Sequence record: LR588166.1
Strand: one strand, 5' to 3'
DNA length: 64,000 bases
This document shows, piece after piece, positions 1 to 60,631 of the stretch. The notes under the pieces are model-generated. The model searched no databases. It was given only the letters and a program-made list of their open reading frames with translations, and was not told the origin of the DNA. Made by a program: the position numbers and the translations under genes. Position 1 is the stretch's first letter; every line of letters starts with the position of its first letter.

Positions 1-2277
1 GATATATTCGGTAATAATGCTAAAGCCATTAAGCCATCTAGCATAAATGAAAAAATGACTCAAATGAAAATGCTAGATTTTTCGCAAACGTGCGAAATAG
101 ACGTCAGGCCAGAATTTAGATGCTTGGAAGTAAACTATAAGAATGCACCTATGCCAGATTTACATGTTGCATTCTTCGATATCGAGACCGCGTTTGATCA
201 AAAACGCGGTTATGCCGACCCGGCTGATCCTTTTAATCCCATTATATCAATATCTGTATATCTGCAATGGATGCAGCAAATGGTTTGCTTAGCATTAGCA
301 CCAGAGACTATATTGCCAGAAGATGCACAACGCATAGCATCAGAAGTAGGCGAAACAATTATATGTAAAAATGAAAAAGAAATGCTAAGTATGTTTATTG
401 ACTTAGTAGAAGATGCAGATATTTTATCAGGTTGGAACTCAGAACGGTTCGATATTCCTTATACTTTTAACAGAATTGTAAAATTATTAGGTAAGAATGA
501 ACTAAGAAAATTATGCCTTTGGGATCTTATGCCCAAGAAGCGCAATATTGAACAAGAAGGCGGCAGTAGTTTTGTTACATTCGAAACGTTTGGTAGAATA
601 CATTTAGATTATCTCCAATTGTATAAAAAATATAATTACGAAGAACGTCATAGTTACTCGTTAGATTCTATTTCGGAAATCGAACTAGGTGAACGAAAAG
701 TTCCATACAACGGAACATTAGACAAACTTTATAAATATGATTTTAAAAAGTTTTTAGAATATAACATTCAGGATACTCGACTCCTAGATAAGTTAGATAG
801 AAAATTAAAATATATAGATCTAGCTTCCACCATTGCACATAGTAATTGCATTCCTATCCCTACTGTTATGGGTGCAGTAGCTACAACCGAACAAGCAATT
901 ATAATCGAAGCACATAATAACGGCATGGTAGTGCCATCTAGGCAACGTTTTAAAAATAATGATACACTTAAAGCTGCGGGCGGTTGGGTAGCATATCCTA
1001 AAGTAGGACTGCATAGAGATATTGGCTCTAGTGACTTGAATTCACTGTATCCTTCTGTGTTAAGGGCACTAAACATGAGCCCAGAAACTATTATAGGACA
1101 GGTTCGATTAACGCTTACTAACCCTGCAATCGAAGAATGGTGTGCAAAAGGCGGAACAAAACATACATTTGCTGCATGGTGGAACGATAGGTTTACCACT
1201 TTAGAAATGGAATATGTGTTAAACAAAGACAGGGGTACTATATTAACGTTAGATATGGCAGACGGGCGCTCGTTTGAACTGTCAGGTGCCGAAATATACG
1301 AATTAGTATTCAACAGTGGTCAGAATTGGCATATCAGTGCTAACGGAACTATATTCACACAAGACAGAGCAGGTGTAATTCCGTTACTACTTACAAGATG
1401 GTATGCAGAACGTAAAGGGATGCAGAAAATTGCATCAGATTATAATTCTTTAGATAAAGAACACCATAGCGACAAAACTGTATTTTTAGAAGATAAATCA
1501 GTATTAGATGGAATATGCGTAGGCGAAGTTGAATTAGCAGACCATTATAATATTAATGATGTATATGTTGCAGCTACATTAAAAAATCTTGTCGAATCAA
1601 AAAATTGGCAAGAAGTAGCAATATATATGAAAAAGTATGGACTAGAAGTGTCGTCTGACAATTCAATTGTTATGTCAGATTCCCATATGCAAAACGAATA
1701 TTACGAATATTGGGATAAAGCCCAGTTAGTTCGTAAAATTGGATTAAACAGCTTATATGGCGGACTACTTAACGAACATTCTAGATTCTACGATAAAAGA
1801 CTAGGACAGAGTACTACACTTACTGGGCGCTGTATCACTAGACATATGGCTTCTAAGACAAACGAAATGTTCACTGGCATTTACGATCACGAAGGCGATT
1901 GTGTAATTTATGGCGATACAGATAGTGTAGATGGATCAACTATCCTAAATACTTCTTTAGGTAAAATAACTATAGAAGAGTTGTTTAATGTGTCTGACAA
2001 GCATGTAGTTCATGCAGAAAAAGAATTTGCTTCGAACGAAGATGTTATGGTAATGTCATGGGACAATTCTGCAAAACAACCGTATATGGGGCATATAAAC
2101 TATGTGTACCGACATGAAGTAGAAAAAGAGTTATTCGAAATAGAAGACAACAACGGAAATAAAGTTATAGTAACCGAAGATCATTCTATTATGGTTATAC
2201 GTAATGCAGAACTATTAGAAGTTAAACCCACAGATTTAACAGACAGTGATATAATATTATCTATTGTATATGAATAA
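1..2277 (+). CDS. Family B DNA polymerase, N-terminal fragment (5'-truncated by the window) fused to an N-intein
   Basis: Frame is open from base 1. ExoI FFDIET, ExoII GWNSERFD, ExoIII YNIQD, region A DLNSLYPS, region B KIGLNSLYG and region C YGDTD, followed directly by intein sequence. Confidence 0.97.
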   Translation, partial: DIFGNNAKAIKPSSINEKMTQMKMLDFSQTCEIDVRPEFRCLEVNYKNAPMPDLHVAFFDIETAFDQKRGYADPADPFNPIISISVYLQWMQQMVCLALAPETILPEDAQRIASEVGETIICKNEKEMLSMFIDLVEDADILSGWNSERFDIPYTFNRIVKLLGKNELRKLCLWDLMPKKRNIEQEGGSSFVTFETFGRIHLDYLQLYKKYNYEERHSYSLDSISEIELGERKVPYNGTLDKLYKYDFKKFLEYNIQDTRLLDKLDRKLKYIDLASTIAHSNCIPIPTVMGAVATTEQAIIIEAHNNGMVVPSRQRFKNNDTLKAAGGWVAYPKVGLHRDIGSSDLNSLYPSVLRALNMSPETIIGQVRLTLTNPAIEEWCAKGGTKHTFAAWWNDRFTTLEMEYVLNKDRGTILTLDMADGRSFELSGAEIYELVFNSGQNWHISANGTIFTQDRAGVIPLLLTRWYAERKGMQKIASDYNSLDKEHHSDKTVFLEDKSVLDGICVGEVELADHYNINDVYVAATLKNLVESKNWQEVAIYMKKYGLEVSSDNSIVMSDSHMQNEYYEYWDKAQLVRKIGLNSLYGGLLNEHSRFYDKRLGQSTTLTGRCITRHMASKTNEMFTGIYDHEGDCVIYGDTDSVDGSTILNTSLGKITIEELFNVSDKHVVHAEKEFASNEDVMVMSWDNSAKQPYMGHINYVYRHEVEKELFEIEDNNGNKVIVTEDHSIMVIRNAELLEVKPTDLTDSDIILSIVYE
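1924..2274 (+). mobile_element. N-terminal half of a split intein (IntN, 117 aa, Ser1)
   Basis: Starts SVDGST right after YGDTD. Block B TEDH (TxxH) is present. Ends at a stop codon with no HN terminus. Contains no Cys. Confidence 0.93.
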
Positions 2278-3952
2278 AGAATATTATCAGTCATACGCAA
2301 AAGAATTAAAAAAGAATAATAAGAAAGAATACAATCGTATTCTTTCTTTGTATGAGCCTGTATTCGATAAATGGGTTGCATTCAAGTATTATATAGAAGG
2401 AATATCGCCGCCTGTATGTAAAGAATGCAGTAATAGAATAACTGTTTCGGCAAAACAAGCAGAATATCACACAGAATGCAAATATAATAAACACAAGTAT
2501 TCATTCGATAAATTTATAAAATGCATAGATGATGACCAATACATATATTGTGTGTGGAATGGATATATTCCGACATCTAACAATATAACATACAGATGCA
2601 CTAAACACGGCATAATTGTTCAAAAACTTAGTTCTAGACTAAAAGGTCACAAATGCCAAAAATGTTCAGCTGAGCGTAAAGTAAGTCTAGATAACTTTAA
2701 TAACTGGAAAACGCAGTGTTCTAAAATACATAATAATTTTTATGATTATTCTGTATCTACTGATTTTACATTCTTAACAAAAGATGTATCTATTAAATGT
2801 CCAATACATGGAATATTTAAACAAAGAGCAAACGTTCATCAATCGGGTCACGGTTGTAAAAAATGCTCGTTCGAAGCCATCGGTCATAGATTATCATATG
2901 ACACAGATTCTTTTATAGAAAGAAGTAACAATGTTCATAATAATTTTTATGACTATACCAAAACTATATACACTAACATTAGAGATAAAGTTATTATAAC
3001 ATGTCCGATACACGGCGACTTTAATCAGATAGCATATTATCATACTGCCGGACACGGTTGTCAGAAATGCGATTTAGATAAAGTAGCAGAAACTACCTAT
3101 AGATCTAAGGCAGAAATAGAAATATTTGATTTAGTTAAATCTTATTGCTCAGATACAATTCATTCATACAATAAATTTGGATTCGAATTAGACATATATG
3201 TTCCTAGTAAAAATCTTGCAATAGAATATAATGGACTTTATTGGCATTCTTCTAAACATATAGAAACTGATCAAAAGTATAAAACATACCATCTTGATAA
3301 AACCACTACATGCGAACAAAATAATATCCAATTATTACACATTTTTGACAACGAATGGCATACTAAAAAAGATATATGGATCTCGGTAATAAAAAATAAA
3401 CTAGGTTTATCTAATAAAATATATGCAAGAAAAACAGAAATTAAAGAAGTTAATTTCGATGATGCAAAGCAATTTGCTGAAACGAATCATTTGCAGGGTC
3501 ATGCACAATTTCGGTATGCATACGGATTGTATTATTTAGATCAATTAGTTTCTTTATTAACAATTGCAAAACCCAGGTTTAATAAAAATGCAAACTGGGA
3601 AATAGTAAGATTTTGTAACCTAAATAACACAAGTGTAATTGGTGGGTTTTCTAAATTATTAAAGGTAGTTTCTTGTAATTTTACAGGCAAGATAGTATCA
3701 TATGCAAATAGGCGCTGGTCCGCAGGAAACGTTTATGAAAAAAACGGATTTGCCAAAACTTCAATAATAGCTCCTGGATTTTATTATACTGACTTCAAAG
3801 ATACATATAATAGATTATCTTTCTCTAAAGACAAGGCAAAAGTTAAATTAAAAAATTATAATAATTCAGTTAGCGTAGTAGAAAATATTTACGCAAACGG
3901 ATATGGCAGGATTTGGGATTCAGGAAATATTGTTTATACAAAGGATTTATAA
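2270..3952 (+). CDS. Free-standing putative homing endonuclease (Zn-ribbon repeats, PD-(D/E)xK-like nuclease, C-terminal domain)
   Basis: Repeated C-[TP]-[KI]-HG and CxxC motifs, ELDIYVPSKNLAIEYNGLYWHS nuclease-like motif. ATG 2270 overlaps the IntN stop, and its own stop abuts ATG 3953. Confidence 0.8.
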   Translation: MNKEYYQSYAKELKKNNKKEYNRILSLYEPVFDKWVAFKYYIEGISPPVCKECSNRITVSAKQAEYHTECKYNKHKYSFDKFIKCIDDDQYIYCVWNGYIPTSNNITYRCTKHGIIVQKLSSRLKGHKCQKCSAERKVSLDNFNNWKTQCSKIHNNFYDYSVSTDFTFLTKDVSIKCPIHGIFKQRANVHQSGHGCKKCSFEAIGHRLSYDTDSFIERSNNVHNNFYDYTKTIYTNIRDKVIITCPIHGDFNQIAYYHTAGHGCQKCDLDKVAETTYRSKAEIEIFDLVKSYCSDTIHSYNKFGFELDIYVPSKNLAIEYNGLYWHSSKHIETDQKYKTYHLDKTTTCEQNNIQLLHIFDNEWHTKKDIWISVIKNKLGLSNKIYARKTEIKEVNFDDAKQFAETNHLQGHAQFRYAYGLYYLDQLVSLLTIAKPRFNKNANWEIVRFCNLNNTSVIGGFSKLLKVVSCNFTGKIVSYANRRWSAGNVYEKNGFAKTSIIAPGFYYTDFKDTYNRLSFSKDKAKVKLKNYNNSVSVVENIYANGYGRIWDSGNIVYTKDL

Positions 3953-4207
3953 ATGCATAATCTAACAAAACACCTTTTAGGTGTATTTTCTGCAAAAACA
4001 GAAGACGAAGAATATAACAGTGCAAAAAGAGCGTTAGAAGAATTAAACAAAAATATAAAAGAAAGAGATCCTAATAAATTTAATGTGTCTTTAGGAAAGG
4101 TATCTAAAGTAACTAATTTAGGAAAAAAGAAACAATATGTATACGATATAGGGATGAAAAATCCCGATAATCCGTATTTCTTTGGAAATAATATATTAGT
4201 TCACAAT
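3953..4207 (+). mobile_element. C-terminal half of the split intein (IntC, ends His-Asn, +1 Ser at 4208)
   Basis: Block F VYDIG and block G FFGNNILVHN. Ligation restores YGDTD-SCYF. Confidence 0.93.
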
Positions 4208-5092
4208 TCTTGCTATTTTACTGCATGGCCTGCAGTAAAAGACCTTGTAGAATCTGGTGAAATGGAATGGGATAAAGATACTGTCATTAAATTATACGAC
4301 AACGTTTCGTCACAAGTAAGTGATACATTTCCAGAATTTTTAAAACAAACATTTAATGTTCCATATAAAAACTCAGAAGGTGTTATTAAGTCAGGTAGGG
4401 AAATTGTAGCTACTTCTGGTCTTTTTATTAAAAAGAAACGTTATGCTGCTATGATGTATGATAAAGAAGGTACTAGATACGACGACGAAAACAGCCCAGG
4501 AAAAGTAAAAGCAATGGGTCTGGACCTACGTCGGTCAGATACGCCTAAATTTGTCCAAACATTCCTTATGGAAATTCTAGTTATGGTGCTAACACATAAA
4601 ACAGAAGATGAAGTAATAGAATATATTAGAGAATTTAAAAAAGAATTTAATAAAATGAAACCGTGGGAAAAGGGAATGCCAAAAGGCGTCAACGGTATCA
4701 GTACATATGAAGATAAATTAGAAGAACACATGAATAAAAAGTTAGCAGGAAGAGAGTCTAGAATCACTGTCCCAGGTCACGTGTCTGCTGCGATGAATTG
4801 GAATAAACTAAAGCTTATCAATAAAGACCTACATACTCCTAAAATCTCAGATGGTCAAAAATGTGTTGTTTGTTATTTAAAAGAAACAGCAGACAATCAT
4901 TTTACTAGTATAGCATATCCTGTAGATGAATTGCACTTACCAGAATGGTTTACGTCTTTGCCATTTGATGAAGATTTAATGAGAGAAAAAGTAGTAGATA
5001 ACAAAGTTAAGAACCTTTTAGGTATTCTAAAATGGGATTTTAGTAAAACAGAAGAAGCTGCTGCACACTTCGATTCGCTGTTTGGTTGGTAA
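3953..5092 (+). CDS. C-intein fused to the C-terminal fragment of the family B DNA polymerase
   Basis: VYDI...ILVHN|SCYF junction, then KKRYA and KAMGLDLRRSDTPK palm/thumb motifs. Confidence 0.96.
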   Translation: MHNLTKHLLGVFSAKTEDEEYNSAKRALEELNKNIKERDPNKFNVSLGKVSKVTNLGKKKQYVYDIGMKNPDNPYFFGNNILVHNSCYFTAWPAVKDLVESGEMEWDKDTVIKLYDNVSSQVSDTFPEFLKQTFNVPYKNSEGVIKSGREIVATSGLFIKKKRYAAMMYDKEGTRYDDENSPGKVKAMGLDLRRSDTPKFVQTFLMEILVMVLTHKTEDEVIEYIREFKKEFNKMKPWEKGMPKGVNGISTYEDKLEEHMNKKLAGRESRITVPGHVSAAMNWNKLKLINKDLHTPKISDGQKCVVCYLKETADNHFTSIAYPVDELHLPEWFTSLPFDEDLMREKVVDNKVKNLLGILKWDFSKTEEAAAHFDSLFGW

Positions 5093-7878: not shown

Positions 7879-8939
7879 TGAAAGTTATAATAATCCCAAT
7901 CGAATCAATAGAAACTCGGTATACGTCAGAATGGAATACGTTTCTTAAACCGCAACTAGAAAAGTATATAAACGAATCCGGTCTCGATGCAGAAATAGTT
8001 CAAATTGATGTAGATTATGTTGACGAAGGCACCTCTGCGGGCGCCTTCCTTAACTTTGCAAATACAAACATATTCAAAAGCAATCAATTCATTAAGTTAG
8101 CAAGTATAATAGAAACTTTAAACGATAACGATGTTGTTCTCTATACAGACGCATGGAATCCCACAGTAGTTCAACTAAATTACATGCGATCGTTAATGAA
8201 TAAAAAATTTAAAATAATGGGGTTGTGGCACGCCGGTTCGTATGATCCGCATGATTTTTTAGGAAGGCACTTTGATAAAAATTGGTCATATGAATTTGAA
8301 AGATCATTATATAATATATATGATGTAAATTTCTATGCAACTAATTTTAGTAAAGATCTCATGATAGATAACCTTTTTGGTAAAACAGCTAACGTAAACA
8401 GACACGATATAGTAGGTTGGCCAATGGAATATTTAGTTGACCAACTTACACCTTCTCCTAACAAGACAGATACTATATTATTTCCTCATCGAATTTCTCC
8501 GGAAAAACAACCAAATATATTTAAAAAATTAAGATCATTACTTCCTAACTACGAGTTTGTTTTTGCACAAGAAACTAAATTATCAAAGGCAGAATACCAT
8601 ACACTTCTTAAACGTTCTAAAATTGTCTTTTCGGCTTCGTTGCAGGAAACATTGGGTATAGGTTTCTACGAAGGTGCATTAGTCGGTGCAATTCCATTAT
8701 TGCCTGACCGATTGTCTTATAAAGAAATGACAGAAAATGTAAAAAACAGAAATTTGTATGTATATCCAAATGAATGGACTATTTCGGAAAATCTGGCAGA
8801 CCTAAAAAATTTAGTTACCCTAATAGATTATACTATGCGTAATTATAATTTTATAGTAGAAGAAATGAAACTTAATTTACTGCCCGAATTAAACAAATAT
8901 TATAACGGAACAGAGTTGTATAAAAGAATTTTAAAATAA
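7878..8939 (+). CDS. GT-B fold glycosyltransferase
   Basis: FPHRISPEKQP and FSASLQETLGIGFYEGALVGAIP resemble the GT4-like C-terminal domain. TAATG coupling to the transglycosylase gene. Confidence 0.82.
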   Translation: MKVIIIPIESIETRYTSEWNTFLKPQLEKYINESGLDAEIVQIDVDYVDEGTSAGAFLNFANTNIFKSNQFIKLASIIETLNDNDVVLYTDAWNPTVVQLNYMRSLMNKKFKIMGLWHAGSYDPHDFLGRHFDKNWSYEFERSLYNIYDVNFYATNFSKDLMIDNLFGKTANVNRHDIVGWPMEYLVDQLTPSPNKTDTILFPHRISPEKQPNIFKKLRSLLPNYEFVFAQETKLSKAEYHTLLKRSKIVFSASLQETLGIGFYEGALVGAIPLLPDRLSYKEMTENVKNRNLYVYPNEWTISENLADLKNLVTLIDYTMRNYNFIVEEMKLNLLPELNKYYNGTELYKRILK

Positions 8940-10206: not shown

Positions 10207-10641
10207 ATGTACGATAAAAACTTTGTATCAATGGATCAAATGCCAGTTATTGTCAGTGACTTAGTTAGTGATATAGACGAAGCAGGAATTTCTCCTAAAG
10301 TTATTATTGCTATTAGCAAAGGTGGACTAATTCCTGCCACTATGATTAGCTATTATTATGATTGCCCTATCGTAACATACGATCCGGTAGAAGATTGTTT
10401 TAGTACAAATAATGATATAAGTTCTGAATGCATTATCGTAGATGATGTTATCGATACAGGCAATACTGTAAATTCTGTTATTTCTTTGCTAGAAGACGAA
10501 TTCTTTTTTACGAAAGAAGACATTAGTAAAATTAGAGTAGCATCAATATTTGCAACAAGAAATAATACAATTGTAGATTTTTATCATGACGAAATAAGTT
10601 ACCATGATTCGGTAAGTTTTGAATTTAAACAATTTATTTAA
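10207..10641 (+). CDS. Type I phosphoribosyltransferase (purine PRT-like)
   Basis: IIAISKGGLIPA and the PRPP loop CIIVDDVIDTGNT. Confidence 0.85.
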   Translation: MYDKNFVSMDQMPVIVSDLVSDIDEAGISPKVIIAISKGGLIPATMISYYYDCPIVTYDPVEDCFSTNNDISSECIIVDDVIDTGNTVNSVISLLEDEFFFTKEDISKIRVASIFATRNNTIVDFYHDEISYHDSVSFEFKQFI

Positions 10642-10711: not shown

Positions 10712-11584
10712 ATGAAACACAGATATACTGAAAAGTTTTTCTCAGTCCAGGGAGAAAGCCTACATACCGGAAAACTATGCACTTGGCTTAGATTTTTCGG
10801 ATGTTCGTTGCAATGTAGGGGCTTTGGACAAAAAGAACCCGGAAATCCCGAAACATGGGTAGAACAACGACCGGATTTAATAGATGTAACAAACATTACA
10901 GATTATAAACAATTACCGACTCCTAAGTATGGATGTGATTCAGACTATTCTGTATTTGCTAAATTTAAACATCTTGCAACAGAAGTCGATCCTGTTGTAG
11001 TTGCAAATGAAATAAAACAATTAATTCCTAGTAAAACATTTGGTAAAAAAATAGGTCATGTATTTACGGGCGGAGAACCGTTAGTAAACCAAGAATCTAT
11101 AGTAGATATAGTAAATTATTGGATAGATACTAATGATTATCCTGCATGGATAGGAATAGAAACAAATACAACTAGACCGTTAGAAAAATGCTTAATCGAT
11201 TTAGTTAACAGATGTAAATCGATTGGTGTGCAATTTTATTTTTCTATGTCACCCAAACTACTTCATGTAGCAGGTGAACAACCCAAACGAGCTATCCATA
11301 TAAATTTAATGAAGGAATATATAGATATTGCACCGGATAGCTATCTAAAATTTGTAGTAAATGAAGATCAGCGATCGTGGGATCAAGCAAAAAGTATAGT
11401 AGACACATTAAATGCTGACGGGTATTTACCAGATGTGTGGGTTATGCCAGTCGGAGGCATTTATTCCCAACAAACAGACCCAGTAATTGGAAGACTTGCA
11501 GATAAAGCTATCTTCGAATACGAATGGAATGTTAGTTTACGTGTTCACGTATTAACCTGGGGTGACGATCAACTAGGTAGGTAA
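10712..11584 (+). CDS. queE: 7-carboxy-7-deazaguanine synthase (radical SAM)
   Basis: EKFFSVQGE, LRFFGCSLQC...GCDS, FTGGEP, IETN, SPK, KFVV, VMPVG, SLRVHVLTWG. Confidence 0.88.
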   Translation: MKHRYTEKFFSVQGESLHTGKLCTWLRFFGCSLQCRGFGQKEPGNPETWVEQRPDLIDVTNITDYKQLPTPKYGCDSDYSVFAKFKHLATEVDPVVVANEIKQLIPSKTFGKKIGHVFTGGEPLVNQESIVDIVNYWIDTNDYPAWIGIETNTTRPLEKCLIDLVNRCKSIGVQFYFSMSPKLLHVAGEQPKRAIHINLMKEYIDIAPDSYLKFVVNEDQRSWDQAKSIVDTLNADGYLPDVWVMPVGGIYSQQTDPVIGRLADKAIFEYEWNVSLRVHVLTWGDDQLGR

Positions 11585-12008: not shown

Positions 12009-12616
12009 AAAAAAGATTATTTCCATTTTGGTTATGGCCATATAGCTGGGGATTACCTGCTAAACAGAAAGCTATTGCAAAAGCAGAGTATTATCTCGAA
12101 GGAGAAGAATTAGATAGGGAATTAGTAGCACTATCGAATGCAACAAGCAAAGCCAAAGAAATTGAATTATTACATATTGATTTTAAATATGGTAAAATAA
12201 CAGAATACGAATACGATGTTGCTTTAGCTAAAACTCAATACGATCTGGGCCTGGCTTTAGACTTAAAATTAGCTGATATAGATTTAAAGCATCATAAAAT
12301 AAATGAAAGGGAACATAGCAAACGAATTGCTACCTTAAGAAAGTTACCTTGGGTAGATATAATAAAGATAGGCTTGTCTTCCTCTGATATTTCGACAGGA
12401 GAAATGGAATTAGACTGGAATGAATATTTTATAGAAGAATTGCACGAATACGGATATGTAGGTAGGACTGATGAAGAAGTAGTAAATTTATGGTTATCTA
12501 CTTTATGTAAAAATATTGCATTAGACGAATTCGGTGGAATGGGATCTGTAGACGATCTTTCAGAAGATAATGACAAAATAGATAGCAAAGAAAACTATAA
12601 AAGGGAATTTAAGTAA
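12005..12616 (+). CDS. Hypothetical protein
   Basis: ATGA overlap with the upstream gene, coupled to the RNase H gene. Confidence 0.7.
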   Translation: MKKRLFPFWLWPYSWGLPAKQKAIAKAEYYLEGEELDRELVALSNATSKAKEIELLHIDFKYGKITEYEYDVALAKTQYDLGLALDLKLADIDLKHHKINEREHSKRIATLRKLPWVDIIKIGLSSSDISTGEMELDWNEYFIEELHEYGYVGRTDEEVVNLWLSTLCKNIALDEFGGMGSVDDLSEDNDKIDSKENYKREFK

Positions 12617-21349: not shown

Positions 21350-22534
21350 ATGTCCACTAAAACCCTAGAAGAACGCATCATCCGCGCCCGTGTTCAGTTG
21401 CTGTTGAACCATCCGTTTTTCGGGACCTTGGCGCTGCGCCTTAAACTAGTCGAGGCGAACGACTGGTGCCCTACTGCCGGTACTGATGGACGCCATCTTT
21501 ATTATAATACCAAGTTCCTCGAAGACTTGGACGATAAGGAACTTATCTTCCTCATCGGTCATGAGGTAATGCACGTCGTCTACGACCACATGGGGCGGCG
21601 CGGCAGCAGAGAGCCTAAACTGTGGAACTGTGCTGCCGACTTTGTTATCAACCTCGAATTGCACGATATGAAGATCGGCAAGCTTATCCACCGTCCGGGT
21701 ACTTGCGAGCCGTGCTTTGATGAAAAGTACCGCGGAATGTCCGCTGACCAGATCTATGAACTAATTAAGAAAGACCCGTCACTAAAAGATAAAGATAGCT
21801 TCGACGTTCACCTCGAACCCGGTGGTGCCGGGAATGAAGACGGCGATGCCTCTGGCAAATCCGGTCCTATCCCTATGTCTGCAGATGAGCAAGCTGCTCT
21901 TCGGGACGAGATCACTGAAGCTGTTCTTCAGGCTGCTAAAGCTGCTGGCGTCGGCAACACTCCGGCAGGTGTGCGTCAGATGATCAGTGACATCACTGAA
22001 CCTAAACTAGATTGGCGCGAATTGCTAAACCAGACTATTCCGTCGCACATTAAATCCGACTATATGTGGACTCGTCCGTCGCGGAAGAGTTGGGGAACTG
22101 GTGCTACTCTGCCGGGTCAGATTGTCGATGACAAGATCGATGTTATCCTAGCACTAGACGCCTCTGGTTCGATTAGCTCTTCTCAGCTAAGGGATTTCTT
22201 AGGAGAAGTGCTAGGAATTATGGAACAGTTTAGTGACTTTTCCATACAAGTGCTAACGTTTGATACTAGAGTGTATGAATTCCGAAAATATACTCCCGAC
22301 AATGCAGACGAAATCTATGAGTATCCCCTTAAAGGCGGCGGCGGTACCGATTTTGTGGCTGTGTTTAACTTCCTTAAGGATACGCTCACTGAACCGCCAC
22401 ATCAGCTAGTATTCTTCACTGACATGGAAGTGTATGACTACGGCGATCCTAACTATTGCGATACTGTGTTTATAAACCACGGTCGCAAAGGTGTAACTGC
22501 ACCGTTTGGTATCACCATCGACTACGACGAATAA
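21350..22534 (+). CDS. VWA-domain protein with an N-terminal HExxH metallopeptidase-like domain (MoxR partner, DUF2201-like)
   Basis: TAGTDG, GHEVMH, WNCAADFVIN, MIDAS-like DASGS and GGGGTDF. GC-rich codons. Confidence 0.88.
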   Translation: MSTKTLEERIIRARVQLLLNHPFFGTLALRLKLVEANDWCPTAGTDGRHLYYNTKFLEDLDDKELIFLIGHEVMHVVYDHMGRRGSREPKLWNCAADFVINLELHDMKIGKLIHRPGTCEPCFDEKYRGMSADQIYELIKKDPSLKDKDSFDVHLEPGGAGNEDGDASGKSGPIPMSADEQAALRDEITEAVLQAAKAAGVGNTPAGVRQMISDITEPKLDWRELLNQTIPSHIKSDYMWTRPSRKSWGTGATLPGQIVDDKIDVILALDASGSISSSQLRDFLGEVLGIMEQFSDFSIQVLTFDTRVYEFRKYTPDNADEIYEYPLKGGGGTDFVAVFNFLKDTLTEPPHQLVFFTDMEVYDYGDPNYCDTVFINHGRKGVTAPFGITIDYDE

Positions 22535-22545
22535 TCGTAGGTTAA

Positions 22546-22579
22546 AACAAAAAAGGGGCTTATAAGCCCCTTTTTTGTT
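22546..22579. terminator. Bidirectional terminator
   Basis: AACAAAAAAGGGGC-ttataa-GCCCCTTTTTTGTT. Confidence 0.85.
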
Positions 22580-22580
22580 G

Positions 22581-22739
22581 ACTAGTTTTAGCTACTTAAA
22601 GCGCTGTAGCATAGCTGTATACAAGCGCTAAATTAGCGCAAATTTGCGTGTTTTTATGCTTTACAATACATAGCTAATACTACGCATGCAAAACGCGCTA
22701 TAGCGCAAATTTGCGTGTTTTAAGCACATCTACTATACT
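22581..22739 (+). promoter_or_regulatory. GA/TC/GG/CC-free tract with a 21-bp direct repeat and a promoter
   Basis: No GA, TC, GG or CC in 22581-22729. TAGCGCAAATTTGCGTGTTTT at 22634 and 22701. TTGCGT-17-TATACT at 22711-22739. Confidence 0.8.
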
Positions 22740-23113
22740 TTTTATTTTGCATTGTATTTAATGCACAAGGACAGTATTGTATGCTTGTTTGTGTCAAATA
22801 AGACAATTAAATGTTATGTTACATTATCTTCCAGTTATACTATTCGTTTATTTTATAGGAAACATATTATCATTGTTTTTATATAATGTAGTATCATACA
22901 GCACACTATTTCCATATAGTATGTTACACAAACAAAACCACAAGCAAACTCTGTTTCATAAATTTATAAAAATGTGGTGGTTTTCTTACTTAAATGTTAT
23001 TGTACTCAGTTGTGCTTGCATATATGTAATAGGCAAAAAATATATAAAGAGAATTTGAAATATTATAAAGATTTTATTAAGATTATGATAAATTTAATAT
23101 AGAACTAATTTAT

Positions 23114-29218: not shown

Positions 29219-29307
29219 ACGTATACCGTAAAAATTTTTACCATACTATAAAATATGTATATTCAATAGTCAACTGTGTTTGGTAACAAAATGTGGTAAT
29301 TAGGCAC

Positions 29308-29336
29308 TTGACATTGGTATTGTCTTTTAGTAAACT
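29308..29336 (+). promoter_or_regulatory. Sigma70-type promoter with no ORF downstream
   Basis: TTGACA-17 nt-TAAACT. Confidence 0.7.
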
Positions 29337-29341
29337 GTGCG

Positions 29342-29972
29342 CTTGCGTAAGAAATGTATATACGATAGTGCTATATGTATATACAGACAAGTGGCTCTGT
29401 TCCATCATTGGATATTGGTAGTAGAAACTATCCCCATCGTGCTGTTATTGTAGTTCCGATAGTGTCGGGTTAACGTTTTAACAGTTATTTAAATTATGAT
29501 TTTGGGTGCCACAGAGATTGTACTTACTAAAAGGACTTAGTAAGAACCGCATATAATCTCGAAACTTGTGTAGGATGTTGGTCTAACCACGGCATAGAAT
29601 ATATGCCTCAACTACTACACGGAAAGGATGATGCTCTGGTTGAAACAGAGTTTCTATAAATCTTTCAGTATAGATTCCGTATGACTGAAAGTTGAAACAC
29701 CAACATCAATGGACTATAGTTTTTGTTAGTGTGGCTATAGTTTATTCCGGCATTGAAAGTATATGCAGTGATGCGAGACAGTAAGCATTAGTAGCAACTG
29801 TATATATGAGTAAGAGGATGCGTTTACAATGAGGAATTACCTATCGGTGCCCGCCTCAGGGATTGCACTTCCCAACGTACACTAAACTTCGTACCATACC
29901 GAAACATACGTTTCTGTTATTACGATTTCCTTCCCAAACGGGGAGGAAATCTTCTCCGCCCGAATATCATAA
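29342..29972 (+). ncRNA. Candidate large structured non-coding RNA (~630 nt), family unassigned
   Basis: ORF-free and more GC-rich than its flanks. More than 12 nested helices by eye, a long-range helix 29494-29506/29959-29972, and G-U wobbles that favour the + strand. Confidence 0.6.
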
Positions 29973-30013
29973 GATCAAAAACATTAATAATTAATATATA
30001 AAATTCGTTTAAT

Positions 30014-30067
30014 TAGTTATTAAGTATATGAGTTGTAGTTTACGAAAACGAATATACTTAATAACTA
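30014..30067. repeat. Perfect 16-bp inverted repeat
   Basis: TAGTTATTAAGTATAT (30014-30029) / ATATACTTAATAACTA (30052-30067). Confidence 0.9.
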
Positions 30068-30183
30068 CCAGTGAAGCTTGCTTCGCTGTTTAAAATTGCA
30101 ATTTGTATTTTCAATTTTATATTTTGAAATGTGTTTTTGAAAATCAATCTATAAAATATAATTTTAAATATTATTTTTAAATG

Positions 30184-30270
30184 TCATTTTGTGATTTTAA
30201 TTTAAAATAATATTTCATGATTTAAAATGGAAATATATTAAACAATATCATTTTGTGATTTTAATTTAAA
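30184..30270. repeat. 23-bp direct repeat in a very AT-rich zone
   Basis: TCATTTTGTGATTTTAATTTAAA at 30184 and 30248. Confidence 0.85.
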
Positions 30271-31039
30271 CAATTTCATATAAAACTATTTTGTCTATTT
30301 CTTTTATAATCTTAAAGTCATTAAAAACCCTACATTTGTAGGGTTTTTATTTGATTATATGGTATATAGTATTCGGTTTTAGACATTCAGATTATTATAA
30401 TTAATAATATCTGTATGATAACTATATTTTATAGAAATACATTTACTAATTACATTTGCCAATAAATGGTTATTTTCTTTATATTTAATACGTCTCGGGA
30501 GTATATAGCAAATATTATAAATCGAGACACATAATATTTGTGTCTATATTTTTTTTAGTTTCATTACTCTACATAATCGATTATTAATGTATACAGTTAT
30601 ATACGCTATATTGTAATAACAAACCAAATTATATAGAGAATATACATTAAACTCTGTTTTGTGTTAAATCGACACTACATATATTATTATGCATTGATAC
30701 TTGCCGTATATAAAACTAATTAGTTATTATGTGCTTTAAAAGAATTCCATTATAATTAGTTTTCTGTGTCATATTCAAATGATGAAAAACATAATTCTTT
30801 CATCTATTTTTATTAAATGTTATTCAAGATTTATAATATAATTTTATAATGTTTGCAATTTATGACACAAGCTATTTTAATAGAATTATACTATTCAAAG
30901 TTTTGACTTATTTTGTGTGTAAACGACAAAAATAGGCATATATATAAAAAGCACACCTGTTTCCTGTATGAAACAAAATAGTATTTTATTAAAAATAGTG
31001 TATAGTAGTAAAAAACATCATTAATCATGCACGCAATTT

Positions 31040-31918: not shown

Positions 31919-31947
31919 TTGACTCATTTGTTGGATAGCACTATACT
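31919..31947 (+). promoter_or_regulatory. Sigma70-type promoter
   Basis: TTGACT-17 nt-TATACT. Confidence 0.7.
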
Positions 31948-36403: not shown

Positions 36404-36692
36404 TTATAGCAAAGTATATGAACCGAAAGGCGCACTATATAGAATTCGTCGCATTTCTGACGGTGCATTTAGCACAGGGTCTTCCAGTCCGGCGTTTGTA
36501 ACTTCTGGTCCGGGAAAAGTATTCAATACTTTAGGTAAACTTAGATCTCATCTTACTACTATTCGTAATAACCCGGTTTTACAAGACATATACAACGAAT
36601 GTGAAATTGTTCAGTATGTAGAAGCTGACCAGCCAACATACACTCTAGCTGAACACACAGAATTACTTATACTTAAAAAGTTAACACAATAA
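36387..36692 (+). CDS. Hypothetical protein
   Basis: TTG start, overlapping the upstream gene. Confidence 0.6.
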   Translation: MTKKINYSKVYEPKGALYRIRRISDGAFSTGSSSPAFVTSGPGKVFNTLGKLRSHLTTIRNNPVLQDIYNECEIVQYVEADQPTYTLAEHTELLILKKLTQ

Positions 36693-36796
36693 CGCGCTTT
36701 ACTGCGCGTTAATTTGCGCGTATGCTGCAAAAACATGTAACACTAGAGCTTATATACGCTTATGCTTAAAAAGCTGTATAACGCAATTTATGCGTT
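36661..36796. promoter_or_regulatory. GA/TC/GG/CC-depleted tract with hairpin
   Basis: Single GA (36746) in 136 bp. AACGCGC/GCGCGTT hairpin at 36691-36710. Confidence 0.7.
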
Positions 36797-40366: not shown

Positions 40367-40838
40367 AACCATACAATCTCTCCGAAGAGAAATAGAATTA
40401 TTAAAAGATCAAGGTCTAAAATTAAGACATATAAAAAATCCTTGTAAAAAATGTATGGGCTACGGAATTATTTGTTATGGATCTACTGCTATGTGGAACA
40501 GAGGTGCAGTAGGAGGGAATGCAATAACACCCGGCCGGTGCGATTCTTGCTGGGGTTCTGGTGATGAAGATAACCCGTGGGAAAATTTATTAGAATTAAC
40601 AATTCAAAAAAGAACAATAGATACAATCTACAACTCTCTTAAATTGGACGGTTGGATAGAAGTAACGTCCGATACTGTGTTTTTTAAAGGAAGTAACCGA
40701 GTTGTTACTAAATCTGGAAATATTTTATATGGATATAGAAGTTATTATAATGACAAACAATTAATCTGCTACATCGAAGAACCTAATACTTCAATTAATT
40801 TAAAAATAACTAGTTGTGTTTTTATACAAAAGTGTTAA
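40359..40838 (+). CDS. Protein with a DnaJ-type CxxCxGxG zinc finger
   Basis: CKKCMGYG and CDSCWGSG. Confidence 0.75.
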   Translation: MNETIQSLRREIELLKDQGLKLRHIKNPCKKCMGYGIICYGSTAMWNRGAVGGNAITPGRCDSCWGSGDEDNPWENLLELTIQKRTIDTIYNSLKLDGWIEVTSDTVFFKGSNRVVTKSGNILYGYRSYYNDKQLICYIEEPNTSINLKITSCVFIQKC

Positions 40839-40860
40839 AATGTAATATATTTAAAAACTT

Positions 40861-41250
40861 TTGAGATTACCAATGTATAATTTCGAAAAGTTTATAACCG
40901 AGTATCTGTATAATAAAAAAGAGACAGAGCATTACGGGTATTTTTCTATATATAATTCTATTATTTTAAAGTGTATTTCTGGATGTTCAGATGAGCACTA
41001 CGAATTTATTTCTAATTCTTTTATATCATATAAATGTAAAAAGAAATTAATAATAGAATTTTCTGTTAAATCGAAAGATAACATATACCATTCCATTAAA
41101 CTTGCAGCAAAATATCACTCTAAAACAAAAGAAAAGTTAGACACTATTACTAATGTGGATAATTTATTTTTGTTTGAAACAAAAATAGGAATTATAGGTA
41201 ATAATTTGTCTGTATATGTAGATTTAGGCGAAGTAGAATATATTGTATGA
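40861..41250 (+). CDS. Hypothetical protein
   Basis: Colinear ORF. Confidence 0.55.
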   Translation: MRLPMYNFEKFITEYLYNKKETEHYGYFSIYNSIILKCISGCSDEHYEFISNSFISYKCKKKLIIEFSVKSKDNIYHSIKLAAKYHSKTKEKLDTITNVDNLFLFETKIGIIGNNLSVYVDLGEVEYIV

Positions 41251-48167: not shown

Positions 48168-48231
48168 TTTATTTAATACGATACTAGACTATATATGGTA
48201 TTCTTTTGTATGATATACAACGACAGTTGGG

Positions 48232-48391
48232 AATTTAAATGCTTTTTACAGTTGCTGCAAAGCATGCAAAATAACGCATACGTAAACAGCACAAAACACG
48301 CGCATAATGCGTTGTTTGTGTGCTTTGTGTATACTGCACTACTATGCAAACTAGCATGCAAAATAACGCATTTTTGCAGCTATAACGCTAG
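48232..48391. promoter_or_regulatory. GA/TC/GG/CC-free intergenic tract
   Basis: 160 bp without these dinucleotides. AGCATGCAAAATAACGCAT occurs twice. TG-TATACT at ~48328. Confidence 0.8.
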
Positions 48392-48610
48392 GGGTACGTA
48401 TTCTTACAAATATAATAATTTGCTAGAATGATGTATATTTTTAAATTCTAAATTTAACCTATCTTATAATATACATTACGGAAATGTTACAATTAAAAAT
48501 TTTATTATCTCAGACTTTATGCACATTCAATCTTATAATACTATATTAAATACAAGTAAAAATATATTTATTGATTTGCAAGTAACATTTAACAAACGGA
48601 GTATATTTTA

Positions 48611-50613: not shown

Positions 50614-50829
50614 CATATAAAAGTATGCGTATAATTTGCACATATAACGCAATAACACAGCAACAAACAAAACGTAATAAAAAATGTTGCAATAGCTTAA
50701 AAGTTTTAGTATAATAAGCACATAACAACGCAATACAGTTTACAAACAAAACGTAATAAAAAATGTTGCAATAGCTTAAAAGTTTTAGTATAATAAGCGT
50801 ATAATGCAGCATAGCTAACAAGTTAAAAC
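50614..50829 (+). promoter_or_regulatory. GA/TC/GG/CC-free tract with tandem duplicated promoters for the tRNA cluster
   Basis: 216 bp free of these dinucleotides. 57-bp direct repeat (50663-50719, 50742-50798), each copy with TTGCAA-17-TATAAT. Confidence 0.85.
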
Positions 50830-50906
50830 CCCTCGGTAGCTCAGTTGGTTAGAGCGCGCGACTCATAATCGCTAGGTCACTGGTTCGAATCCAGTTCGAG
50901 GGACCA
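50830..50906 (+). tRNA. tRNA with CAT anticodon, Ile2 (lysidine)-like, copy 1
   Basis: Cloverleaf with CCA. Anticodon arm GCGA-CTCATAA-TCGC resembles bacterial tRNA-Ile2. Elongator Met is not excluded. Confidence 0.9.
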
Positions 50907-50928
50907 ATTTTAAGATGTTGTGCTTTTA

Positions 50929-51013
50929 GCCCGAGTGGTGAAATTGGTAGACACAGGAGACTTAAAATCTCCCGCTTCGCAGCGTACCGGTTCGAGTCCG
51001 GTCTCGGGTACCA
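50929..51013 (+). tRNA. tRNA-Leu(TAA), copy 1
   Basis: GGAGA-CTTAAAA-TCTCC, long variable arm, CCA. Confidence 0.95.
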
Positions 51014-51063
51014 AACAAAAGATATAAATACTTAACAAGATAGGAAACTATTCTAAAATTAAA

Positions 51064-51139
51064 TGGCTAGTAGCTCAGTTGGTAGAGCAAATGACTGTTA
51101 ATCATTGGGTCGTAGGTTCGAGTCCTACCTAGCCAGCCA
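51064..51139 (+). tRNA. tRNA-Asn(GTT)
   Basis: AATGA-CTGTTAA-TCATT, G73, CCA. Confidence 0.95.
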
Positions 51140-51165
51140 ATTACACTTTGTTGTATATTCAATAT

Positions 51166-51241
<76 letters not shown>

Positions 51242-51310
51242 ATTTTAAATAACAGTTGTATCTAAAGAGATACAATAGTCTAAATAAAATATTCATATAA
51301 TGTTTCAAAC

Positions 51311-51387
51311 GGGACTTTAGCTCAGTTGGTTAGAGCGCGCGACTCATAATCGCTAGGTCACTGGTTCGAATCCAGTAAGTCCCACCA
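51311..51387 (+). tRNA. tRNA with CAT anticodon, Ile2 (lysidine)-like, copy 2
   Basis: Identical to copy 1 except the acceptor stem (GGGACTT/AAGTCCC), CCA. Confidence 0.9.
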
Positions 51388-51437
51388 ATTTTTATATACA
51401 AATCAAACTATACTTAAACTATATAATGAATGAATAT

Positions 51438-51522
51438 GCCCGGTTGGTGAAATCGGTAGACACAGGAGACTTAAAATCTCCCGACGAAAGTCGTGCCAGT
51501 TCGAGTCTGGCACCGGGCACCA
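51438..51522 (+). tRNA. tRNA-Leu(TAA), copy 2
   Basis: Same anticodon arm as copy 1, CCA. Confidence 0.95.
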
Positions 51523-52388: not shown

Positions 52389-52417
52389 TTGACCGAACAA
52401 ACAAAACAGTATATAAT
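52389..52417 (+). promoter_or_regulatory. Sigma70-type promoter for tRNA-Arg
   Basis: TTGACC-17 nt-TATAAT. Confidence 0.7.
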
Positions 52418-52468
52418 GTTACGCATACAAAGCATTATTACAAAGCTATCATTAGTTGCACAAGATAT

Positions 52469-60029: not shown

Positions 60030-60326
60030 ATGGCAAATATAATTAAAATGAAACCGGTATTGTATTATGTAGGTGATAATCCCGAAGGGGCATTTCTTTG
60101 CGAAATTTATGGCAAGGAATACCCATTTATCAATAATGAAACTAGATTTATTAAAGTTAATTCTATTTTTTATATATCTTTTATATCTGTTAAGTATACA
60201 TATATAAAATTTCTAGTTAGATATAGATTTGTTGTATGGAGGTTATACGACACTGACATTTATATTTCCTTTAGTAGAGCTATGACATCTGTTGAGCGAG
60301 AAATTAATAAAATAAGAGGAATTTAA
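60030..60326 (+). CDS. Hypothetical protein
   Basis: Colinear ORF. Confidence 0.5.
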   Translation: MANIIKMKPVLYYVGDNPEGAFLCEIYGKEYPFINNETRFIKVNSIFYISFISVKYTYIKFLVRYRFVVWRLYDTDIYISFSRAMTSVEREINKIRGI

Positions 60327-60462
60327 AAAATGCGTTATTTTGCACGTTTGCATTATGCTATACGCAAGTTTGCAATAACGTGCAAACGCATGTATAACGC
60401 TAATACAGCTAACAATACAGTGCATAAAAACATGTACAGCATACTAGCGTTACAACGCATAT
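60320..60462 (+). promoter_or_regulatory. GA/TC/GG/CC-free tract with promoter upstream of tilS
   Basis: 143 bp free of these dinucleotides. TTGCAA-17-TATAAC at 60370-60398. Confidence 0.8.
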
Positions 60463-60631
60463 CGTTGAACTATAAATGTATATATATCTGGAGCAATATG
60501 GTATTCTTGTCAGTCACTACTGATGATACCTTAACTACATATCATATATATAGAAAAAGTTTAAGAACTGGTTTAGAATCGTGTAATTTTTCTTATGTAC
60601 TTGGATTAGTTATGAAGGAAGGATATTAGGT

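Follow-up and report, generated by a model that had tools for sequence, protein, structure and literature searches.

The genome of the Pseudomonas phage vB_PaeM_MIJ3 contains islands of up to 216 bp from which the dinucleotide steps GA, GG, TC and CC are absent, so that neither strand has a G before a purine (R); such DNA is called GR-free below. The islands were studied in a stretch of 64,000 nucleotides (the window), which is 100% identical to bases 124001-188000 of MIJ3 (LR588166.1), and they are named by their first position in it. MIJ3 is a 288-kb Pseudomonas jumbo phage of the PA5oct-like genus Wroclawvirus; its DNA is 97% identical to that of PA5oct, and there are ten more records at 97-98% identity, including PA5oct, Cassandra, Paride, 30-2 and 30-3. 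The avoidance of GA, GG, TC and CC in the islands is under selection and the feature is real. As to its cause, we lean, with modest confidence, towards the view that the islands are non-coding regulatory DNA built from contexts that are spared by the phage's own base modification.

Exclusion of four dinucleotide steps

The maximal strict GR-free runs of the window are 50614-50829 (216 bp), 48232-48391 (160 bp), 22581-22729 (149 bp) and 60320-60462 (143 bp). A fifth tract consists of two runs, 36661-36746 (86 bp) and 36747-36796 (50 bp), with one GA between them at 36746-36747. All five had been described in a reading of the sequence alone, and their limits and composition agree exactly with that description, down to the single GA. 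A genome-wide scan for maximal GR-free runs, proposed in the same reading, was made on the public MIJ3 record minus its last 170 bases, the sequence used for all genome-wide controls. The four strict tracts of the window come out as the four longest of the 288-kb genome, in which the 99.9th percentile of GR-free run length is 46 bp. The next longest run in the window (40792-40863, 72 bp) is only 15% G+C and, being so rich in A+T, has no significance.

The four steps account for 15.0% of all steps in the window and 15.8% in the genome; the sequence-only reading had assumed 12-17%. Under a first-order Markov model of the window, the chances of the four long tracts, from the longest down, are 1.6e-15, 1.1e-11, 6.4e-11 and 1.7e-10, and multiplication by the 64000 start positions still leaves 1e-10 to 1e-5. 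For a run of 150 bp, the sequence-only reading had estimated a chance of about 1e-9 to 1e-12. Since the 216-bp tract, which precedes a tRNA operon, includes a tandem repeat with a period of 79 bp, its probability was also computed minus one repeat copy (P = 4e-10).

A second genome-wide scan scores the contexts of G and C only, and here the maximum score in 200 permutations was 15.0. Eight islands exceed this maximum, five of them with scores of at least 30, and a ninth equals it. Forty-two islands score at least 8, against 12 expected, and 16 or 17 of the 18 that score at least 10 are intergenic according to our own reading of the MIJ3 annotation tables. When all 45 pairs of unique dinucleotide steps are ranked by the ratio of observed to expected longest run, the pair GA/TC and GG/CC comes first, at 3.47. 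A chance origin of the islands is thus rejected by the permutation scan, by the step-pair ranking and by the Markov probabilities. The second most extreme step-pair exclusion of the genome is a 133-bp run without AT or TA (MIJ3 about 203627-203759), which falls within the range of the minus-strand coding sequence MIJ3_00305.

The tracts are not poor in G and C. Their G+C content is 27-38%, the 216-bp tract holding 27 G and 31 C, and an extra island outside the window (MIJ3 221805-221909) reaches 48%. In island DNA the frequency of GC steps is raised 3.5-fold and that of CG steps 1.7-fold, while AG/CT is near normal (0.83), indicating that G is retained, solely before C or T. Nor does the duplication of one ancestral tract explain the pattern, since the longest stretch common to two islands is 26 bp, the 79-bp-period repeat inside the tRNA tract left aside.

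This composition bears on the idea that a cytosine deaminase, acting on both strands of DNA that is single-stranded much of the time, has left the islands as its mutational footprint. APOBEC- or DddA-like enzymes act on C preceded by T or C, and the loss of TC and CC from both strands fits this context. However, G+C is not depleted (27-48% in the islands against 30.5% in non-coding DNA as a whole), GC steps are enriched, and the rate of evolution is lower in the islands than in their flanks (see below). Such a footprint is scarcely credible. Avoidance of host defence motifs is another way to arrive at a local shortage of short words. P. aeruginosa carries type I-F and type I-C CRISPR (clustered regularly interspaced short palindromic repeats) systems, and CC/GG and TTC/GAA, which include the protospacer-adjacent motifs CC of type I-F and TTC of type I-C, are indeed missing from the islands. 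But the exclusion extends to GA/TC steps outside TTC/GAA (46 expected, 1 seen) and does not touch the type I-E motif AAG/CTT (25.8 expected, 25 seen), and the shielding of 150-bp patches in a 288-kb genome brings no benefit in immunity. We regard motif avoidance of this kind, for these or other host defence systems, as very improbable.

Conservation of the islands

The five islands of the window remain GR-free, with 0-2 exceptions, in PA5oct, 30-2, Cassandra and 30-3. When 13 islands were compared with these four relatives, 2 of 28 substitutions were found to create a GR step, against 38% expected with the observed mix of transitions and transversions taken into account (P = 2.8e-4). Islands 36661, 48232 and 60320 change 3-4 times more slowly than their flanks, coding sequence included.

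Searches of IMG/VR and of the JGI metagenomes with the gp391-like protein, with tRNA-Met and with the promoter unit described below gave no further Wroclawvirus-like sequence. Twenty-six loci (about 170 kb) from distant relatives, reached through TilS-like and ATPase homologues of 38-47% identity, contain no island.

Probable context of the DNA modification

A 2025 preprint reports that PA5oct DNA resists EcoRI, BmrI, ApaLI, XbaI as well as BsaI and is cut by BsgI, FspI, HindIII, NdeI and DraI/DraIII (PMC12191111). The authors suggested a modified G in GA and/or GG, and they found that END nucleases, which sense modified G, restrict PA5oct (PMC12191111). We counted the sites of the resistant enzymes in MIJ3: every one of the 97 EcoRI, 103 XbaI, 65 BmrI and 20 BsaI sites contains GA or GG. 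ApaLI is the sole resistant enzyme without either step in its site; it has a single site in MIJ3, and its resistance is therefore uninformative. In the sites of all the cutting enzymes an internal G stands before C or T only. Hence nine of nine informative enzymes are split by their GA/GG content, the same rule that describes the islands. It must be noted that nine is a small number of enzymes, and that the digests were of PA5oct DNA.

The published digests lead us to infer that the steps modified in the virion DNA are 5'-GA/GG-3' (or, equally, TC/CC of the opposite strand), and the modified base is probably a 7-deazaguanine derivative. The sequence-only reading had predicted this context from the islands, and the nine enzymes agree with it (PMC12191111). 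It had also stated that nanopore work placed the DpdA-installed 7-deazaguanine of coliphage CAjan at GA and GGC, which is correct (PMC7544227).

The 7-deazaguanine precursor genes FolE, QueD and QueE are all present in MIJ3. FolE (PF01227, E = 6e-60) and two QueD proteins (PF01242, E = 2e-30 and 2e-21) are encoded at MIJ3 75713-79235, away from the queE locus of the window.

The match between excluded steps and modification context could be coincidental if the islands were ordinary arrays of protein-binding sites or promoters, with the steps excluded by DNA shape or by the motifs themselves. Short motifs do recur, ATAACGC having 11 of its 36 genome copies in the 1.5 kb of islands; purines and pyrimidines alternate more often than in the window at large (0.61-0.71 against 0.51); and the modification context has been read from only ten enzymes. 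Yet no long sequence is common to the islands, the spacers between motifs are as GR-free as the motifs, and substitutions shun exactly GA, GG, TC and CC. The excluded pair is moreover one of 45 possible, the very one implied by the digests, and the abundance of AA/TT steps means that the sequence is not of the alternating, Z-DNA type. We consider an explanation by such arrays unlikely. Z-DNA tracts as such were rejected, given an alternation fraction of 0.61-0.71, AA/TT at its expected level and no long strict alternation.

A proposed role as regulatory DNA readable on the incoming genome

GR-free stretches occur at about ten or more places in the genome. Lacking GA, GG, TC and CC on either strand, an island cannot be modified, whatever the enzyme. 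If the virion DNA bears its modified base in GA/GG steps, the islands would stay unmodified by sequence, and proteins that read the major groove would bind them alike on the modified, freshly injected DNA and on new DNA. The main candidate for such a reader would be the host sigma-70 RNA polymerase, although further regulators may bind too. According to the published structure of sigma region 4 with the -35 element, region 4.2 contacts N7/O6 of the G in that element. On this proposal the islands would extend from roughly -40/-100 to +10/+40 of promoters and would drive the tRNA operon, two abundant noncoding RNAs (ncRNAs) and early genes.

The best example is island 50614 (Table 1), in which no GR step occurs before tRNA-Met begins at 50830. 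It contains two exact copies of a 57-bp unit, each composed of an A-rich UP-like stretch, a -35 element, a spacer and a -10 element. The resulting promoters, P1 and P2, each match the sigma-70 consensus at 10 of 12 positions. The proposal that the longest tract is the promoter region of the tRNA operon is supported by two tandem TTGCAA-17-TATAAT promoters before tRNA-Met, and the -35 variants named for the islands are in place (TTGCAA at 50687 and 50766; TTGCGT at 22711). The tRNA block itself starts with a duplicated Met-Leu pair, a parallel to the two tandem copies of the promoter unit immediately before it.

Table 1. Islands, promoters and other features of the window (window positions)
Feature	Position	Strand	Description
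Longest GR-free island	50614-50829		216 bp; from upstream of the promoters to tRNA-Met
Tandem promoter unit, copy 1	50663-50719	+	57-bp exact repeat, period 79 bp
Tandem promoter unit, copy 2	50742-50798	+	Same 57-bp repeat
Promoter P1	50687-50715	+	TTGCAA (50687-50692), 17-nt spacer, TATAAT (50710-50715)
Promoter P2	50766-50794	+	TTGCAA (50766-50771), 17-nt spacer, TATAAT (50789-50794)
Third, overlapping -10 TATAAT	50800-50805	+	Extra -10 at promoter P2
First tRNA block, behind island 50614	50830-51522	+	Met, Leu, Asn, Thr, Met, Leu
Promoter upstream of tRNA-Arg	52389-52449	+	TTGACC (52389), 17-nt spacer, TATAAT (52412)
GR-free island	48232-48391		160 bp, 37.5% G+C; top score of the genome; intergenic in MIJ3
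GR-free island	22581-22769		149 bp strict, 189 bp with one GA
Intrinsic terminator hairpin	22546-22579	+	15-bp stem; island 22581 begins right behind
Promoter-like pair	22711-22739	+	TTGCGT (22711-22716), 17-nt spacer, TATACT (22734-22739)
GR-free island	36661-36796		One GA; spans the junction of gp365/gp366 homologues (PA5oct numbering)
GR-free island	60320-60462		143 bp; 170 bp upstream of tilS-like gene
QueE-like radical SAM (S-adenosylmethionine) enzyme (7-carboxy-7-deazaguanine synthase)	10712-11584	+	Annotation; 60% identity to pf16 QueE; part of the presumed modification pathway
Phosphoribosyltransferase beside queE	10207-10641	+	Neighbour of the QueE gene

All units described in the literature as early, or as transcribed at a very high level, have a shorter island directly upstream. 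In PA5oct, ncRNA001 and ncRNA002, whose 5' boundaries derive from RNA-seq, take 2-5% of the phage reads (PMC7318152). ncRNA001 is annotated from 8263 and is preceded by a GR-free run at 8186-8271 with TTTACA-17-TATACT, and ncRNA002, annotated from 21951, by a run at 21901-21967 with TTTACA-17-TATTAT. The runs end at the 5' ends of the two RNAs, the bodies of which have a normal GR content. Another run immediately precedes gp34, with which the reported early cluster opens. Outside this cluster a single early gene, gp450, has been named; it starts at 190473, behind the run at MIJ3 190410-190462. The operon of the frd/folA orthologue, which is reported to peak early, is preceded by a run at MIJ3 12404-12455 with TTGCAA-16-TATACT.

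Sigma-70-type -35 and -10 elements with a spacing of 16-18 nt are thus present in islands 50614 and 22581 and in the runs before ncRNA001, ncRNA002, gp450 and the frd operon. Their -35 variants TTGCAA, TTGCGT, TTGCTA and TTTACA are all without GA. Where a promoter can be recognised, the GR-free run covers about -40/-60 to +10/+40, an extent that, judged from the sequence, would roughly match an RNA polymerase footprint together with the initially transcribed region.

The same data speak to the possibility that small structured RNAs are encoded by the islands themselves. On the minus strand, the folding of two islands is better than that of shuffled sequences (z = -2.9 and -3.2), and islands 48232, 60320 and MIJ3 221805 are each followed by a gap of 170-250 bp. 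The constraint is, however, strand-symmetric, and ncRNA001 and ncRNA002 begin where the tracts end, with bodies of normal GR content, which makes small-RNA genes unlikely. Most z-scores are weak in addition, and a search of Rfam gave no family other than tRNA. On balance this origin appears quite improbable.

Difficulties for the proposed explanation

A number of observations weigh against islands kept unmodified for the host polymerase. Some concern transcription. The early and high-expression calls used above are coarse statements in papers, not base-resolution starts. Among the window islands scanned, a consensus scan found good sigma-70 promoters in the tRNA island only; a relaxed scan added the TTGCGT-17-TATACT pair at 22711 and gave only weak candidates in islands 48232 and 36661 and no sigma-70-like promoter in island 60320 or MIJ3 221805. 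The description of the five tracts as promoter windows accordingly holds for the tRNA tract and in part for island 22581, and is overstated for 48232, 60320 and 36661, where no sigma-70 promoter is convincing. The depletion of GR steps in the average promoter is only mild, and at least 21 promoter-like sites of the TTGAC type have a normal GR density. The further claim that the tracts are kept free of modification for host sigma-70 RNA polymerase has in its favour the selection on the islands, their positions before early units and the dependence of PA5oct on the host RNA polymerase, rifampicin abolishing progeny; the 21 TTGAC-type promoters stand against it.

Other difficulties concern the modification itself. 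The digest rule fits a modified G in GA/GG, a modified C in TC/CC or a modified A in GA equally well, and Iyer et al. credited PA5oct with five Mom-like adenine modifiers alongside its deazaguanine system. A specificity like that of Mu Mom (A between G or C on both sides) was rejected, as the islands contain CAG and CAC and BsgI, whose site includes CAG, cuts. The sequence-only reading had assigned the modification to a phage transglycosylase, and this part finds no support from Pfam, PHROGs or tblastn. No DpdA/TGT was detected in 30 open reading frames (ORFs) compared singly with Pfam, 10 of them also with PHROGs, and TGT is absent among the best 25 of 39 Pfam families matched by a batch of 61 ORFs of 200-520 amino acids, the other 14 families having E > 1.9e-7; these profile scans mostly left out ORFs below 200 or above 520 amino acids. 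The DpdA proteins of CAjan and iggy gave only E > 1 in tblastn against the MIJ3 genome. QueC is unannotated in MIJ3 and PA5oct, and the QueC of phage pf16 has no tblastn match in MIJ3, pf16 and MIJ3 having only QueE, QueD and FolE in common. The route by which a deazaguanine-type base enters the DNA may be non-canonical.

A last group concerns generality. CAjan has no GR-free or GA-free islands. The Pseudomonas phage iggy, which carries a DpdA with a strict GA motif (PMC10484667), does contain GA/TC-free runs of 150-171 bp; these are mostly low-complexity, G+C-rich coding sequence and hence ambiguous. With no islands in CAjan and ambiguous runs in iggy, the principle is not general, and the encoding in cis of a counterpart to the modification seems peculiar to Wroclawvirus phages. 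Two GA/TC-free runs of iggy, 60074-60225 (152 bp) and 3179-3286 (108 bp), are intergenic and may represent a weaker version of the same phenomenon. In pf16, 19 kb were examined and no comparable island was seen.

A possible division of the promoters into two classes

The 21 TTGAC-type sites are not evenly spread. The regions at MIJ3 28-156 kb and 265-273 kb contain most of them, in front of dnaG, folE/queD, the gene of the late sigma factor and other replication-phase genes. In the early and tRNA region, MIJ3 160-240 kb, the GA-free -35 variants prevail. Near-perfect TTGAC(A/T)-17-TATAAT examples are seen at window 31919-31947 and at MIJ3 53119, 75614 and 265811. The genes behind such promoters (dnaG, folE and the gene of a gp55-like late sigma factor) have been described as middle or late. 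From consensus sigma-70 promoters one would not expect such timing, unless a modification of the incoming DNA affects the GA of their -35 element.

This regional contrast prompted a model in which DNA modification sets two promoter classes apart in time. GR-free promoters (TTGCAA, TTGCTA, TTTACA) would be readable on the injected genome and fire at once or throughout infection, while TTGAC(A/T)-17-TATAAT promoters, with a modified G in the -35 element, would remain silent until replication yields unmodified daughter DNA. Hypermodification would then serve both as a restriction shield and as a replication-coupled timer of transcription, its installer not being a recognisable DpdA. The model is speculative, and we think it unlikely to be correct as it stands.

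Islands without a convincing promoter

Apart from promoters, the G+C-rich islands 48232, 60320 and 36661 probably also hold binding sites or hairpins. Motif B (GCATGCAAAATAACGCAT) is present twice in island 48232, at 48262 and 48354, and once, inverted, in island 60320 at 60330; sites of its core, TGCAAAATAACGCAT, are at 48262-48279, 48354-48371 and 60330-60345. Island 48232 precedes the gene block leading into the tRNA operon and island 60320 the tilS-like gene, and translation-related genes may share motif B as a control element. Island 22581 has two copies of motif A (AGCGCAAATTTGCGTGTTTT), at 22635 and 22702, and is followed at 22816 by a small ORF homologous to PA5oct gp341. A search of the genome found no copy of either motif outside its own islands. 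The G+C-rich islands are also full of short dyad symmetries. As RNA they fold with z = -0.7 to -3.2 relative to shuffles, most values being weak and the shuffles folding almost as well, so that the restricted alphabet by itself accounts for most of the symmetry.

These elements invite the alternative that the islands owe their freedom from modification to a DNA transaction other than transcription initiation, such as replication origins, R-loop priming, signals for recombination or packaging, or operators of phage regulators. It would account for the absence of convincing sigma-70 promoters from 48232, 60320, 36661 and MIJ3 221805, and the dyad symmetries, the island-specific motifs A and B and the conservation of the islands beyond that of neighbouring genes are in line with it. 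On the other hand, the islands are too numerous for origins or packaging sites (eight above the permutations, and the 42 against 12 given above), nearly all precede plus-strand transcription units according to our reading of the annotation tables, and none is at a terminal repeat boundary. Motifs A and B, found nowhere else in the genome, do not define a regulon, and the folding of shuffled sequences takes away much of the weight of the symmetries. We do not think this alternative a likely one, although it may hold for some of the islands. The reading as regulatory DNA spared by the modification does not depend on the polymerase alone, as other regulators may be among the readers.

Two annotated ORFs run across islands, MIJ3_00262 (60330-60629) across island 60320 and PA5oct gp386 across 48195-48407. 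GR-free DNA cannot hold TGA stops, and in relatives frameshifting indels (5 and 6 bp) occur just downstream; together this makes ORFs across islands doubtful. MIJ3_00262 is probably spurious and PA5oct gp386 doubtful.

In the promoter upstream of tRNA-Arg, the GR-free run (52396-52449) starts just behind the -35 element TTGACC, which itself holds GA and CC. Several island promoters have the -10 sequence TATACT or CTATACT (window 22731-22739; MIJ3 12432, 202319 and 209678), which resembles the preference of sigma-S. Phage Paride reportedly requires RpoS and (p)ppGpp for replication in dormant hosts.

Elsewhere in the window, the gene of a family-B DNA polymerase (1-5092) is interrupted by an HNH homing endonuclease gene (2270-3952), and several further HNH genes are dispersed over the MIJ3 genome. 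An annotation-free gap of 1.8 kb (29219-31039) separates divergent gene blocks; ncRNA004 of PA5oct maps into it, at about 29369-29987.

Relation to known systems

The nearest relatives in biochemical terms are the DpdA systems of CAjan and iggy. Like them, MIJ3 has a pathway of the preQ0/CDG (7-carboxy-7-deazaguanine) type, represented by FolE, QueD and QueE, and restriction resistance, as reported for PA5oct, is confined to G-purine contexts. Iggy also has its host, P. aeruginosa, in common with MIJ3. MIJ3 differs in that neither DpdA nor QueC was found, and in having a phosphoribosyltransferase gene beside queE.

Island 50614 resembles the rrn P1/P2 promoters and the early promoters of T5 and T4 in its tandem pair, its 17-nt spacers and its A-rich upstream stretches. 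Like promoters of the rrn P1/P2 type, which precede stable-RNA operons, it lies directly before a tRNA operon. It differs from all of these in its -35 element, TTGCAA instead of TTGACA, and in a unit and leader without the four dinucleotides. To our knowledge, the classical T5 promoters are not GR-free.

Two more distant parallels may be drawn. The unmethylated CpG islands of vertebrates are likewise promoter patches spared a genome-wide base modification and open to transcription factors. They are, however, rich in the target dinucleotide and protected in trans, while the MIJ3 islands lack the target steps, and the likeness is one of analogy and not homology. Avoidance of restriction sites and palindromes is also selection against short words because of an enzyme that acts on them. 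In its classical form it is genome-wide and directed against host enzymes, whereas MIJ3 shows it only in regulatory patches of 50-216 bp, where it is apparently directed against the phage's own modification. We found no description in the literature of modification-motif-free islands for any phage. The concept is a variant of motif avoidance and of unmodified promoter islands that, as far as our searches showed, has not been described.

Implications

The partial, sequence-specific hypermodification of phage DNA has been studied almost solely as a shield against restriction and CRISPR, and little is known of how a phage expresses its own genes in the face of it. If the explanation favoured here is true, MIJ3 and its relatives would be the first case, as far as the literature shows, of a phage that excludes its own modification motif from its regulatory DNA. 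The modification context, G before a purine, would then be predictable from the sequence alone, without knowledge of the enzyme, and scans for long runs without small sets of steps could expose modification motifs in other phages. For the Wroclawvirus phages, which include a therapy candidate and model jumbo phage, the islands amount to a list of candidate immediate-early or constitutive promoters, and they offer an experimental handle on whether bases of the 7-deazaguanine type block recognition by sigma-70.

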